A model generated the notes under the pieces. It saw only the letters and a list, made by a program, of their open reading frames with translations, searched no databases and had not been told where the DNA came from. The translations under genes were made by a program, and so were the position numbers. From positions 46,196,862-46,260,861 of the forward strand of contig CM074511.1 in the NCBI GenBank assembly GCA_037379345.1: a DNA stretch of 64,000 nt, written 5' to 3'. This DNA comes from Perna viridis (lineage: Eukaryota). Shown one piece after another: positions 2,952-26,700 of the stretch (position 1 is the first letter of the stretch; each line of letters starts with the position of its first letter).

Positions 2952-14767
<11,816 letters not shown>

Positions 14768-20044: not shown

Positions 20045-20734
20045 TGAGTACAACATATCACAACTATAAGATATATTTTGGCATCAATGATGACAATATA
20101 GTCTTGGTACCTGCTACTGAATACTACATAATGCTTAACAATTTTTTTATACCAATGTTAAGTTAAAATGACACGAGCATCTAAGTTTCCGTCATAAAAT
20201 CATGTGTCGATTTCATCAATCATACAACAGGAATGTGAAGTTCACAAAACACAAACATCAGCACCAGTCATATCATCTCCAAACTAAAATCTTTCAATTT
20301 TGTTATTTACAAATAAAACATCCACTATATGACCTTTGCTGAGAAGCCATATGATGTACTTGTCCTCTTAGCTTAAGTCTATATAAAGCTTATTGCACAT
20401 GCTAACACAACCAGCAAACTATCATGAATTTATCATCAATAGCTAGCCGTACTACTGGCCATATCAAGATATTTCAATAGTTGGAAATAAAGGTAACATT
20501 TCAATTAATTTCATAGCCCTTCTCTGCTAATAAAAATGAGTTATAGAATATTAAAATCTGGAGATAATCTGTTGGACAATTAAATCTATTACATTGATTT
20601 ATTTCTTTTTGTAAACAAACAGAATTGATCCATGGTATTGGACATTAAATCCTTAAATTATTTGTCCAGTGTAAAGAATGGATGTACTGGTAATGTATGC
20701 ACATTAAAACATCAATTGGCGAATTTTTCTTCTT

Positions 20735-23700
20735 TCACTTAAGTTTCCTATTATCAGATGCTGTATCTAGACTTTGCCAATCATCATCCTCATCTTCATT
20801 TGCCCATACTTCATTGTCCCAGCCAGAATTTCCGTTGGTTGTTACTTCAGAGTCCTCACCAAGGTCCAAAAGATTTCCCACTAATGGTTGTTTCTGTTTT
20901 TGTTTATCACTAGAACTGAAGCCAGTATTCCAGTCCACATCTTCCCAGCCATCACTTGATTTACCTTTAGAAGATTTTTTTACTTTTTCATTTGTATTGT
21001 CACCCCAGTTGTCCCAATCATCTTCAGTTTTCTTTGGTTTAGGTTTAGAACTAGATTTTCCAATTAAGGAATCATCGTCATTATTCAACCAAGATTCTAG
21101 ATCATCATCAGCTTGTTTTGTGTCATAGCCCGAAGAGGAGCTTTCTGATTTCATTGCTCCTTTAGATCCTTTACTATCCCAATCATTACCCCAGCCCCAG
21201 GAATCATCATCCTCTTCAGATAACAGTCTGTTTTTACTGGGATCTCTGTCAAAATATATAAAATGATTGTTTTCTTCATTTAATGAGCATTAGCACCAAC
21301 AGTATTCAAGTATCCAATCCATATAACATATAGATTTGGTCTCTACAGCACAGGATGGAATGATTTTACATGAGATCTTTTTCAGCACCATTACAATTTA
21401 TTTTTAATTAAGAAATAAATCACATAAAACTCCATTTTATCATTGTTTTACCATGGGCTGGCCTTTTATGTTGCATTATTTTACCCTGAGCAATAGCAAG
21501 GGGTTAAATAACAACATAAATGGCCAGCCCGTGGTAATACAATGATAAAAGCAGTTTCCGTGATTTATTTCGATTCTAATAGGACTAGTTTCTTCATATT
21601 TTTTAATAGAAGCAGCCTATGAGCACAAAATGTTGGTCATGTTTATCACTTTTTTTACATGTCTATGATCTAAAGAGCTTTGAAGCACATCATATTAGAA
21701 TTTATCCATACGCATTACCATATAGTTCTCTAACACTGCATTATGTTTCATGGTATTCAACAAGTAATAAAAGAACACTTGCACACAACAGATTGACATA
21801 CAGAGGGACACATGGACAAAATCCTACCCCTCCCCTAAACTTCATTTGCAGGTAATGATATAATCAACATTGAATGTTCTTATCATTTTGAAACTTGTAT
21901 TGATTAATGTGATAATTTATTTTCTGTATAAATTTTCAAACTTTCACTTACTTATCTGGAGATGAGTTTCCACTCAACAAAGTCGATTTTTCTCCAGGAC
22001 TGGTATCTACTGATGACAAAGTTGTCTTAGGCTCTCCCCAAAGTGACTGAAAATTATTCCAACCCTTGGAGCTGGCACTAGACAGCTGAAATATTTACTG
22101 ATACTGTTACATTACCATGGTCATACTTAATACATTGATAATGGTACGATGTACTATACATAATTTTGTCACTGATATTTTATACAAGCCTTGTCTAACA
22201 ATGGCTAATCTCAATTTGATATTTTTGCCATGTCAAAGTAAAATCTATAAATCTATAATGTGTAACAATGAGTTGACACGTTGATACATCGAAGTAGCAG
22301 ACAAAAGCTGATATGCTTAAAACAAGAGGCTCCCAGGAGCCTGAATTGCTCACCAGGTTAAATTCTGTCTTTTAAGGGCAAAAAATTGAACAAGAAGTAG
22401 TCCAAAAATTTCAACTCAAGAAGACTTTGGTAGGATTATCATAAAGATCATTTCAGCAATTGAAAGTTTCTTTCTATGTATTATAGTTTTCAAGATATTG
22501 GCTGAAAACTGTAAAAAAAACAAAAAAACAAAAAAACATCATTTTTCATCTTTCAAGGGCAATAACTCTTACAAGGAGTCCTCTGACAACTTTGATCCCT
22601 CGAAGACTTTTGTGGGCCTTATAAGGGTCATTTCAGCAATTGAAAAAAATTGGATAATTCTTACGCTTTTGTAAATATGGCTCACCTTGTTAAATTTTTG
22701 CCTTTCAAGGCCAATAACCCTAACAATGAGTTGTCCGACAATTTTGACTCCATTTGATTCATTGGAGACTTTTGTAAGCCTTACAATAAGGATCATTTCA
22801 GCAAATGAAAGCCATTTGCTAAACCTAACAGATTTGGAGAGGTATGTAAAAATCTGCTGTCTGACCCCACTGTTCTATTTTTATAAACGACAGCCATGTT
22901 TTTTAACCAATCAAAAATCCAAAGTCATTTTGTTAAGGATACCCTATAAAACAAAAATGTCAACTTTCATTGAATTTTGTAGAATGGTTTCTGAGGAGAA
23001 GATTTGTTAAAGTAATAACATCAAAAATAGCAAAAAATGTCCAAAAAGAGCAATAACTCCAACATGGGTCAACAGATTTTCACCAAAATTTGGCCACAGA
23101 TAGATCTCATCATGCTGAATACTTTTACCCCATCAGAAACCTAAATGTTATAAAGATATATGCAAAAATCTGCTGTTTGACTCCTATGTTCTATTTTTAG
23201 TAATGACGGCCAAGTTTTCAAACAGATCAAAAATCCAAACGGTCCTTCGTGCAGGATACCCTAAGGAACAACTATCATGAGTTTCCTCTAAATCCAATCC
23301 GTAGTTACAGAGGAAAAGATGTTTGAAGAAATTGTTAACGACGATGACAACAGACAACGACGATGGATGCCAAGTGTTGGCAATAGCTAACATGGCCTAC
23401 AGCCAGGTGAGCTAAAAAGTGCAATAACTCCAACATGGCTGAACATATTAAATTGAAAATTTTTACCACAGATTGATCTTATCATACTGAACACTTTTAC
23501 TATGTCAGAATTTGGCTTAACATAATGGTTTTGGAGATATAAATGTGAAAACTACTATCTGACACCTATGTTCTATTATTAATAAAGGTGGCCATGTTTT
23601 TTGACATAACTTGACCAAGTTGTGTCAGAGGAGAAGAGTTTTGAAAAATTGTTAACAACAACAACGAATGACTATAAAGACAAATGCCAAGTGATGGCAA

Positions 23701-26700
23701 TAGCTCAACTGGGCGTTGGCCAGGTGAGCTCATAAAGGAAATTGTATATTGTATTACTACAGCTCTCACTAAAATCATGTCTATAGACATACATTCACAA
23801 GTTCAATTAGCTAGTCCAACCAAATTTTGCATTAATTATTCAATGTTACTGTGTATTACAATATCAGTCTAGCATTTCCTCAAGCACATTTCTGCAAGGC
23901 TCAAATAAAATGTTTTCATTTCACAATAATAACCAGAATGATATATTTGGATAATATGATCAATTTAATCTGAGGATTTCCAATACTATTATTAATATGG
24001 CAGCATGTTATAGATATCAATATTTACACATTGATTAATGTCTTATTACTCCATGGTATTACAGCTGTTCACAGTGCAAAGGTTGTGATCAACAAATATT
24101 CCATTACAGAGGGATCTTTATGTGTTATAATCAATTTTTCGGAACAAAAAATACGTTTCAATAGTTCTACTACAAAAACTTAAGAAATGTACATCTCCCT
24201 ACAATCCACATCCATCACATAAAGCATTGGCATATCCAGATGGGACACAGGGGGTTGGCACCCTTCCTTTTTATTGGAAAATTTGTCATTTTTATGTGTA
24301 AAATAGACAAAAAAAATGGTAAATAATGTCTTAGCACCCCCTTTTTTCTAAGTAACCCTGGCTGGCACCCTTCCTTTTCTAAGTGTCCGGATCTGCCTCT
24401 GTAATGTTATATCCGAATTAATTGAACAGTTGAGGTGGAGGTGCATTACAAGATCCATGAAAGAACAAAATGACAGACAGACAGACATGATGATTCATGT
24501 ATATACCCAAACCTTATTCACAGTTTATATAAATATATGTTACACTGTGGCCATACCTTGGATGCAAAACCACTCATTGAAGAGCCGACGTCATTCATTA
24601 AAGACCCTTCCTTCACCTAAAACACATATAATACTGCATTTAAATCAATGAATTTGTATAGATCAAAAACAATCTGAAACTTCATCCATAACCAAACAAA
24701 TAAGAGCATTCATAATATACAAGGGAGACAGATCACCAATACACAAATTACATCAGAAAATACTGTAACAAAAATTCAAGCAAAGTTAAACATGCATCTA
24801 TCTAATTATACAACATCATAAAAAAGTCATGCAAAATACCATAAAATATTTTTGTTCATCAAGTTTAAAAAGTTTAAAAATTATCCCCTGAATGCCATGT
24901 ACCTGCACCTATAACTCTGTAAAGGTTACTTCATAATTTGGTGAGAAGGAAACGAAAGAGGATCTTTTAATAAATGTTTTAAAAAGATGTCCTTCAAAGA
25001 AAATTTCACTATAATTTTATAATTAAATCTCTCCTATAGCTTCTCTGGAAATGATTAAATGTCAGTCTCTGTAAGAATCAGGGAGTGGGTATGAAAAGAC
25101 CCTCATTTTGATAGTGTAATTTGACTACTTGCACCATCAGAATCAGGGAAAAAAGGCAATATTTTCCATATCATGTTGGTGCATTGAATTATAATTTCAA
25201 TGAAATACACTGAAAAAATGAACATTTCAAGGACAGATAACTCTGTCAAAAACCTCATTTTCCTAACATTCTACTGAAAAATTTCTGAGCAAAGCCAGTG
25301 ATGCAGAGACCAAATAATTGTCTTTTAAAATAGAGAATGTATCCTTGAGTGATATAACATTGTCAGATCGATGGGGTTTTGACATTTATGTTTCTGATTT
25401 TTCCCATTTTGTCTGATTCTTACAAACACTTACATTAAAGCATTATTGGTAACTTGTGATGTCATGGAATATTGGAAACACTTTACATACAATGTTTTAC
25501 ATGAACACACTAAAAGGTAAATACTGAAAAAAAGAAATACCACAAAATACTATTATACAAGTAAAAATTCTGTAAAATTCATCTTTAATTCGCCATAAGT
25601 ATGTAATAATAGCTGATATAATGACATGACAGGAATGACTGTTTACAGCTGACAACCTTTACGTTATTGTATCTATGCAGATACTTACTTTATTTGCCAA
25701 CCCTGACATTGATGATTGTATACCATCAAGTAAAGTTCCTTCTTGAACCTAAACAAGGCAAAATCATACACATTTCATCCAAATATAGATGCATTTAAAA
25801 GAAAATTCCATTACAGTGGATTTTTTTGTTAATTTTGATACATTGTACACGAAAAGCAGAATATGTGAAATCTACTACAAAATTACAACACCAAGGGATG
25901 GGATAGCATGCACTACAACATACAGACTGTCACCAAGTTTACATTGAAGTTTCTTTAATCATATAATATTATAATCGCTAGTTGATGTATAATATTTACA
26001 ATTTTACAATTTCTCAAACTTTTCCGTAATCATTTACAGGGAAGGGTCTAATATTTCCAAAAAAATTGCAATTGTTTCTTTTAGGGAAAATCTAATACAT
26101 ATCTGGATAAAAATACCACTATGAATTACAATATTAACAGGAGTAGGTGGTTAGGTGTCAGACTCCTAAGCTTATCAAAAACACTAAAAACTTGTATACA
26201 TAAGAGAATTAAGTTTCTATATTGGTCCACCTTAAAATAAGTTCTGAAGTAATTATCAAGTTATAAACAGTAACCTCAGGATTACAGTAAATCTAGTCAG
26301 TAAACTGTGACATTACCTTATCCTTAGTTGGTTTAATAACACTTTCATTGACAGTTGTGCCCAATTCTTTTGTCTTTTTAGAAGCTGCAGTGGCTACCTT
26401 TGCAGCCTACAAAAATCAGGAAAAAAGTATATAATCCTTATTATTGCCTTTAACATGAATAATAACATTCAAATCAGCATGTGTAAATAACACTATTTAT
26501 CACTATTCTATATTACCATGACATTCAATTTCTCCATCACTCACTGTCATCAACTATTATGTTGTGAAATTAAATTAACACCTAAAATGTTAGAAAATAG
26601 AACACTGTAGGTAAAATACTCATGTATTTCATTTACAGTATATATACTTTATATTACCACACTAAGAGATTACAGATTATCTCTCTAGACACATCATAGT

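Follow-up and report, generated by a model that had tools for sequence, protein, structure and literature searches.

A 64,000-nucleotide (nt) stretch of the Perna viridis genome (assembly GCA_037379345.1, contig CM074511.1, positions 46,196,862 to 46,260,861; hereafter the window) carries a multi-exon ARFGAP1 gene on its minus strand, running from approximately 48,992 down to approximately 20,738 (~28 kilobases, kb), in which two homologous exons of equal length and phase (60 nt, phase 0) lie next to one another. We refer to these as exon A (upstream) and exon B (downstream), and to their neighbours as exon U, upstream of A, and exon D, downstream of B. Searches of the window were performed one exon at a time. 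Two exons, each searched alone, matched the ArfGap domain PF01412 above its cutoff of 28.7 bits, the upstream one with an E-value of 2.8e-15 (56.8 bits) and the downstream one with an E-value of 1.8e-09 (38.1 bits), and a tblastn search with isoform X1 of the ARFGAP1-like protein of Mytilus trossulus recovered the gene exon by exon, A and B included. Together these matches bear out the gene identity proposed by an initial annotation of this DNA. The hallmarks of ArfGAP1 are likewise present, namely the N-terminal ArfGap zinc-finger catalytic domain, encoded by the two Pfam-matching exons, and two central motifs homologous to residues 199-234 and 264-295 of the rat protein, the amphipathic lipid-packing sensor (ALPS) motifs. 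When the M. trossulus protein was searched against the whole assembly, the non-catalytic exons found their sole match at the present locus, the remaining matches being ArfGap domains that belong to other genes; judged by these matches, the locus is the single ARFGAP1 gene of the genome. The coordinates, peptides and splice borders initially given for A and B hold, both exons being preceded by ...ttag and followed by gt, and the neighbouring exon borders at 26317 and 22085 are correct.

Exons A and B are identical at 11/20 amino acids (aa) and 35/60 nt, with identities of 12/20, 16/20 and 7/20 at the first, second and third codon positions, respectively. Their ungapped BLOSUM62 score is 57, and when all 33,618 20-mers lacking a stop in the six reading frames of the window are scored against B, the next best reaches 20 (mean -18.2, standard deviation 8.9). 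The likeness between the two is far beyond chance. The same six-frame scores revealed no third copy of the unit within the 64-kb window, and the search with the M. trossulus X1 protein found no third exon copy or retrocopy across the genome. Colinear DNA likeness between the two loci, compared over ±400 nt, covers the exon plus ~4 nt on each side only, and the flanking introns are thus unrelated, as had been claimed. Saturated third positions, unrelated introns and conserved second positions together point to an old duplication held under protein-level selection, in line with the initial annotation.

To follow the use of the two exons in transcripts, we turned to public sequencing data. Twenty-four runs were listed, 20 of which cover part of the stretch; none is recorded as RNA, and RNA status is a guess for 14 of the covering runs (17 of the 24 rows). 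Four runs (X1, X2, X8 and X10), from four of the seven studies, were examined as Logan contigs over 20600-26500, and the spliced joints that they contain indicate that RNA is present. The joints from the last exon to D (21245/21952), from D to B (22085/24557), from B to A (24616/25689, skipping 1072 nt) and from A to U (25748/26317) were found in all four runs, and the joint from B directly to U (24616/26317), which skips A, in three of the four, all but X8; every one of these joints is flanked by GT..AG. The D to B joint lies inside the main contig, which is 1449 nt long, or 1477 nt in X8. Where both continuations exist, in three runs, this contig terminates precisely on the upstream border of exon B; in X8 it continues into exon A. 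No A-D or U-D joint was found among the 15 joints listed from the contigs of the four runs. Contig depths at the B-A and B-U joints (29.2 and 20.6 in X1, 15.6 and 15.2 in X2, 48.9 and 0 in X8, 40.8 and 14 in X10) give a rough hint, depth being unfit for ranking the two forms. Exon A is therefore flanked by both inclusion joints (U-A and A-B) and a skipping joint (U-B), with the frame preserved either way. Taken together, the transcripts are U-A-B-D and U-B-D; B is constitutive in these contigs and A is a frame-preserving cassette. Since B is always kept and A is included or skipped, the encoded proteins carry one or two units. The initial annotation had favoured mutually exclusive use of the pair, which the A-B joint contradicts, and had mentioned additive use in brackets, which matches the joints seen. 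It had also named two outcomes that would speak against a splicing switch, one exon never being included or both always being co-included; A and B both occur in spliced contigs of all four runs, and the B-U joint shows that they are not always included together.

Features of the ARFGAP1 locus of P. viridis, in window coordinates (position 1 is the first letter of the stretch)
Feature	Position	Strand	Description
Exon A	25748-25689	minus	60 nt, phase 0; optional cassette copy of the ALPS2-start exon
Exon B	24616-24557	minus	60 nt, phase 0; kept in every contig path seen
A-B intron	25688-24617	minus	1072 nt, GT..AG; contains a high-copy repeat (~24934-25524)
Upstream exon U	26406-26317	minus	90 nt, phase 0, 30 residues; tblastn match
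Downstream exon D	22085-21952	minus	134 nt; predicted to continue the ALPS2 amphipathic helix
Last exon, coding part	21245-20738	minus	acidic, Trp-rich C-terminal region; tblastn E 1.3e-55 to Mytilus ARFGAP1
Exon with ALPS1-like motif	36334-36242 (borders approximate)	minus	matches rat 199-223, FLNSAMSSLYSGWSSFTTGASKFAS (rat motif from Table 1 of PMC4569407)
Two ArfGap-domain exons and intervening intron	39940-39824 and 39145-38975	minus	PF01412
First coding exon	48992-48888 (borders approximate)	minus	tblastn with M. trossulus X1
TGCATG pair	24791-24796, 24828-24833	minus (sense)	175-215 nt upstream of exon B
TGCATG single	25907-25912	minus (sense)	~160 nt upstream of exon A

Several other features of the contigs were recorded around the cassette. 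In all four runs, contigs continued colinearly from exon into intron on either side of A and upstream of B (25721-26344, 25399-25716 and 24589-25174), and in three runs a single contig spanned the whole U-A intron; the B-D intron was represented by short low-depth pieces only, outside its repeats. Such contigs could stem from splicing that is slow or regulated around the cassette, or from retained introns; were the U-A intron retained, a stop would follow after 7 codons. Three intronic stretches of ARFGAP1 (22176-23751, 24146-24342 and 24934-25524) are high-copy transcribed repeats, probably transposable elements: in each of the four runs their contig depths add up to thousands and rearranged joints are numerous. 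In the last coding exon, a G>T difference at window position 21037, present in three of the four runs (X1, X8 and X10), looks like a common non-assembly allele. Outside the window, ~44 kb before its start, two adjacent ArfGap-domain matches (contig positions 46152727-46153064, plus strand, E ~1e-7) mark another ArfGAP-family gene on the opposite strand to ARFGAP1.

The initial annotation had also drawn attention to three sense-strand TGCATG hexamers near the two exons. Their positions proved right, but no enrichment over chance accompanies them: in the 4.2 kb between 22085 and 26317, three were observed against ~1.3 expected from shuffle density (Poisson P ~0.14), and the 28-kb gene holds 10 sense-strand sites. 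Across the window, 71 were observed against 39 expected, an excess due to a tandem array at ~10.8-11.8 kb. Within this array (10799-11794, plus strand), TGCATG comes round ~19 times with a period of 55 nt, and no other region of the window is as rich in GC (0.40). Rbfox-type regulation through TGCATG was considered and dropped, as the sites are real but not enriched.

We then surveyed other taxa at the level of gene models and assembled transcripts. Searched with phmmer, a single ArfGap exon of 57 aa drew 150 representatives, of which 67 reach at least 250 aa; two adjacent 20-residue units were present in 2 of these 67, an isoform from Octopus sinensis and a protein from the annelid Owenia fusiformis. 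The Octopus isoforms differ by the upstream unit only, both in O. sinensis (584 versus 564 aa) and in O. bimaculoides (365 versus 345 and 364 versus 344 aa). A second search, restricted to this region of a Pinctada protein, gave 61 matches, and 38 proteins (the query and 37 matches) were scanned. Seven carry an upstream unit together with B (a Mytilus-like Logan protein, Pomacea, Nucella, Argonauta, Haliotis, a cephalopod-like Logan protein and Saccostrea) and 29 carry the B unit only; of the other two, the Candidula protein apparently reads into an intron and a Mya 'ARFG1-like' model gave no match.

Isoform pairs revealed the same pattern. Among 17 pairs, 15 differ by exactly the upstream 20-mer with B kept (Mytilus 4, Haliotis 3, Saccostrea 2, Octopus 2, and one each in Babylonia, Littorina, Gigantopelta and the chiton Liolophura), and the other two, from scallops, differ by the 30-aa U exon. 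Five further pairs were compared: isoforms X1 and X2 of the nemertean Tubulanus differ by the upstream 20-mer, a Logan-derived 532-aa protein of Crassostrea gigas has both units where the 512-aa isoform X2 lacks one, and the pairs from Glandiceps, Ruditapes and Exaiptasia differ outside the A unit. The optional upstream unit thus recurs in Polyplacophora, Gastropoda, Bivalvia, Cephalopoda and Nemertea, and its annotation in four mollusc classes and a nemertean overturns the initial description of the event as lineage-specific. The A unit of the window is 17/20 identical to the unit found only in isoform X1 of M. trossulus, and its B unit is 20/20 identical to Mytilus B; the flanking exons differ between the window gene and Mytilus. 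Variation of related kinds was noted nearby in the protein, the 30-aa U exon being an annotated cassette in scallops (Pecten, Argopecten), and a U-type unit (...G..VNE.V.KPT..K) being tandemly repeated in cnidarian proteins (Exaiptasia, Xenia), with Exaiptasia isoforms X1 and X2 differing by one 19-aa copy. In general, the linker that separates the two ALPS motifs seems to lend itself to duplication of exons and to their alternative use.

The ALPS motifs of ArfGAP1 are the founding example of lipid-packing and curvature sensing, and we located the duplicated exon relative to them using rat ArfGAP1 (NP_659558.1, 415 aa). Rat residues 259-278, VKEGRIFDDVSSGVSQLASK, align with exons A and B, and VQGVGSKGWRDVTTFFS comes next in the rat protein; exon D aligns with rat residues 279-295, ...GSKGWRDVTTFF, and the ALPS1-like segment of the window gene aligns with rat GWSSFTTGASKFAS. 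According to PMC13139335, citing Bigay 2005 and Mesmin 2007, ALPS1 comprises rat residues 199-234 and ALPS2 residues 264-295. Because they align with rat 259-278, A and B are, by this alignment, homologues of the exon that starts ALPS2, and D carries the remainder of the motif. The placement of the pair in the second ALPS region, proposed at the outset, is therefore confirmed, and so is the existence of a mammalian tissue-specific variant at the same position: in the main rat brain isoform, 10 aa are inserted behind residue 239 and 22 aa are deleted behind residue 259, as given in PMC5730162, and PMC4944158 describes the brain-isoform change as altering ALPS2. The deletion after residue 259 means that the lone mammalian homologue of A and B is itself alternatively spliced. 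The mammalian case (brain isoform ArfGAP1B; Parnis et al. 2006, as cited in PMC5730162 and PMC4944158) thus resembles the window gene in that the ALPS2-start exon is spliced alternatively, but mammals switch between one copy and none, together with the 10-aa insertion after residue 239, where the window gene has two copies or one. In Ruditapes philippinarum, isoforms X1 and X2 differ by a six-residue insertion (VYGWSQ) between the ALPS1 exon and U, which falls roughly at the site of the 10-aa insertion in mammalian brain and heart isoforms.

The evolution of the two units was compared in 17 taxa, comprising the window and 16 two-copy proteins. Mean pairwise identity is 15.8/20 for B and 9.3/20 for A, with the final 20 residues of U in between at 12.5/20. 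The A unit is 20 residues long in 17/17 taxa, and its positions 6, 7, 10, 14 and 17 are hydrophobic in all of them (ILV, FLVY, IMV, LMV and FLW, respectively), with polar positions varying freely. Of the 17 B units, 16 have G at position 11 and 14 have N at position 8, residues that none of the 17 A units has there; a G at position 16 is shared by 15/17 B units and by 3/17 A units, the latter all from mytilids. The absence of these B hallmarks from A argues against repeated recent duplication of B. Capitella has a single unit, which is B-like (13.4/20 to B versus 7.7/20 to A). As 20 columns are too few to resolve a tree, we relied on identity tables and diagnostic columns, with orthology of the A units resting on position and splicing behaviour. 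These comparisons argue for one old duplication, followed by divergence into a conserved constitutive copy and a fast-evolving optional copy. The duplication would have occurred before molluscs diverged, and probably before the mollusc/nemertean/annelid split.

To ask what the extra unit may contribute, hydrophobic moments were calculated (Fauchere-Pliska scale, 100 degrees per residue) with the exons placed in one hypothetical continuous helix. The hydrophobic faces of B and of the first 20 residues of D point to 52 and 67 degrees, and that of A to 192 degrees. The moment of an 18-mer stays at 0.30-0.53 across the B/D joint and drops to 0.08-0.16 across the A/B joint, with peaks of 0.51 within A and 0.47-0.53 within B-D. 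The aligned faces of B and D and their sustained moment suggest one continuous ALPS2 helix, whereas the offset of ~140 degrees between the face of A and that of B-D, together with the collapse of the moment at the A/B joint, suggests that A is probably a separate segment rather than an extension of ALPS2. The exon A peptide is 35% Ser, Thr and Gly and has a net charge of -1 (two acidic residues and one basic). ALPS motifs are described as Ser/Thr/Gly-rich and low in charge, with bulky hydrophobics on one helical face, in PMC4569407. Exon A resembles the ALPS motifs of ArfGAP1, GMAP-210, Nup133 and Kes1 in composition and low charge and would have its hydrophobics on one face, although its moment over the whole 20-mer does not stand out from shuffles; alone it spans only ~18-20 residues, and its membrane binding is predicted. 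Exon A thus probably adds a separate short Ser/Gly-rich amphipathic segment ahead of ALPS2, which would bring the weak membrane-adsorbing units to three. As ALPS motifs bind weakly and additively, higher avidity or a less strict curvature threshold would be expected from the additional unit.

In our reading, then, ARFGAP1 of P. viridis very probably holds two old copies of the ALPS2-start exon, with B constitutive and A an optional cassette, and yields two proteins that differ by one Ser/Gly-rich amphipathic unit, A likely acting as a separate lipid-packing sensor. The 60-nt exon would have been duplicated in tandem long ago, and B and D would form one continuous amphipathic helix, ALPS2 proper. 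On membranes, A may fold as a short lipid-packing-sensing helix of its own, set off by the V-K-E-G start of B. With A present, ArfGAP1 might bind loosely packed or curved Golgi membranes more avidly, or have a different curvature threshold, by analogy with the mammalian brain isoform, which drops the lone homologous exon. This membrane role of A is a prediction from sequence.

A number of observations weigh against this reading. The splicing support comes from Logan contigs rather than raw reads, with RNA status resting on the spliced joints themselves; 28 further joints exist beyond the 15 listed, and contigs drop rare variants, so rare A-D or U-D joints are possible. One Octopus vulgaris model lacks both units, and B is perhaps not strictly constitutive everywhere. 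Models with B only are found in many bivalves (Pinctada, scallops, heterodonts, Solemya and Potamilus), which may reflect loss of the cassette or cassettes that are merely unannotated. The A units of mytilids and oysters are 10.6-11.3/20 identical to B units versus 9.3-10.2/20 to other A units, and partial gene conversion, convergence or separate origins of A units are possible. The moments of A and B over the whole 20-mer are not significantly above those of shuffles (fractions 0.13 and 0.17). Finally, an AlphaFold2 model of M. trossulus X1, built on an alignment of 26 sequences chosen from ~290 proteins, has a mean pLDDT of 53.6 overall and mostly <50 over residues 283-334, and is therefore uninformative here, which is what a region taking up its fold on membranes only would be expected to give.

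Other readings were weighed against the same evidence. Homologous exons of equal length and phase with intact splice sites are what a mutually exclusive pair would look like, each mRNA then carrying one of two ALPS2 starts, and mutual exclusivity is the usual outcome discussed for tandem-duplicated exons in PMC8373072 and PMC5740500. Exons of such a pair are never spliced together, with exactly one included, and we rejected this reading on the A-B joint; the A-skipped form that keeps B, the lack of an A-D joint among those listed and the 15 annotated isoform pairs of ±20 aa, all differing by A alone, leave it barely credible. That both exons are instead always in, as a constitutive internal repeat with the B-U joint being assembly noise, would agree with X8, where the A-B path only was assembled, but is extremely improbable given that the B-U joint appears with GT..AG independently in three runs from three studies, that A-less isoforms are annotated in many species, and that in the C. 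gigas cluster the 512-aa A-less form is listed on many more contigs than the 532-aa form.

The status of exon A itself raises two more alternatives. Its evolution at roughly twice the rate of B would suit tolerated splicing noise without a function of its own; we regard this as very unlikely, as A preserves the frame and is free of stops, keeps its 20 codons and five hydrophobic positions in 17/17 taxa, is at 17/20 identity between the window and Mytilus similar to the neighbouring constitutive exon U, and reaches junction-contig depths comparable, on a rough comparison, to the skipping form in three runs. It is also conceivable that the mytilid A arose, or was overwritten, from B fairly recently, through recurrent lineage-specific duplication or ongoing gene conversion. 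The window A matches its own B at 11/20 and averages 10.8/20 to non-mytilid B units against 8.2/20 to non-mytilid A units, and mytilid A units share G16 with B. Near-saturated third codon positions and unrelated introns speak against such recent copying, as do the lack of both N8 and G11 from A in every taxon and the same position and cassette behaviour in four mollusc classes and a nemertean, and we consider it unlikely.

A wider scenario is offered as speculation, and we think it rather improbable. Rat residues 259-278 are about equally similar to the A set (10.3/20) and to the B set (9.9/20), which does not discriminate in its favour. Copy number of the first half of ALPS2 could be an ancient regulated variable of ArfGAP1, in which A would be the orthologue of the exon skipped in vertebrate brain, used alternatively since the bilaterian ancestor, and B a lophotrochozoan-specific duplicate that took on the constitutive role, an instance of exon-level subfunctionalisation. 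Inclusion of A might then be tissue-regulated in molluscs, for instance in neurons or secretory tissue, so as to tune the threshold of curvature or lipid packing at which COPI uncoats.

The kind of event is already well known, a tandem exon duplication giving rise to an alternatively spliced exon, and the relation between exon duplication and alternative splicing was reportedly treated by Kondrashov & Koonin 2001 and by Letunic, Copley & Bork 2002. Compared with the mutually exclusive exons derived from tandem duplication that are covered in PMC8373072, PMC5740500 and PMC6071210, A and B share the tandem origin, the equal length and phase and the conserved splice sites, but here the two are co-included and only the upstream one is optional, producing an insertion isoform rather than a substitution. 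Close counterparts are the predicted RefSeq and GenBank 'ARFGAP1-like' X1/X2 models of Mytilus, Saccostrea, Haliotis, Babylonia, Littorina, Gigantopelta, Liolophura, Octopus and Tubulanus, whose long form has an extra 20-residue unit directly upstream of a conserved VK[DE]... unit; those models are automatic annotation, whereas the event in the window is backed by spliced contigs. A search of the literature on ArfGAP1 with exon duplication, molluscs or ALPS2 isoforms, with subscription journals and supplements outside its reach, found no description of the unit as a duplicated ALPS2 half. The isoforms are thus already in public annotation, and their relation to ALPS2 is apparently undescribed in the literature searched.

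The finding is of interest chiefly for research on ALPS motifs and on how splicing evolves. For annotation, it replaces a mutually exclusive, lineage-specific pair with a conserved cassette copy of a duplicated exon. Natural isoforms kept for hundreds of millions of years differ here by one extra ALPS-like unit, and such a pair would lend itself directly to testing how membrane avidity and curvature threshold depend on the number of weak amphipathic helices and on their register. The start of ALPS2 emerges as a hotspot of alternative splicing in ArfGAP1, with no copy or one in mammals and one copy or two in lophotrochozoans.

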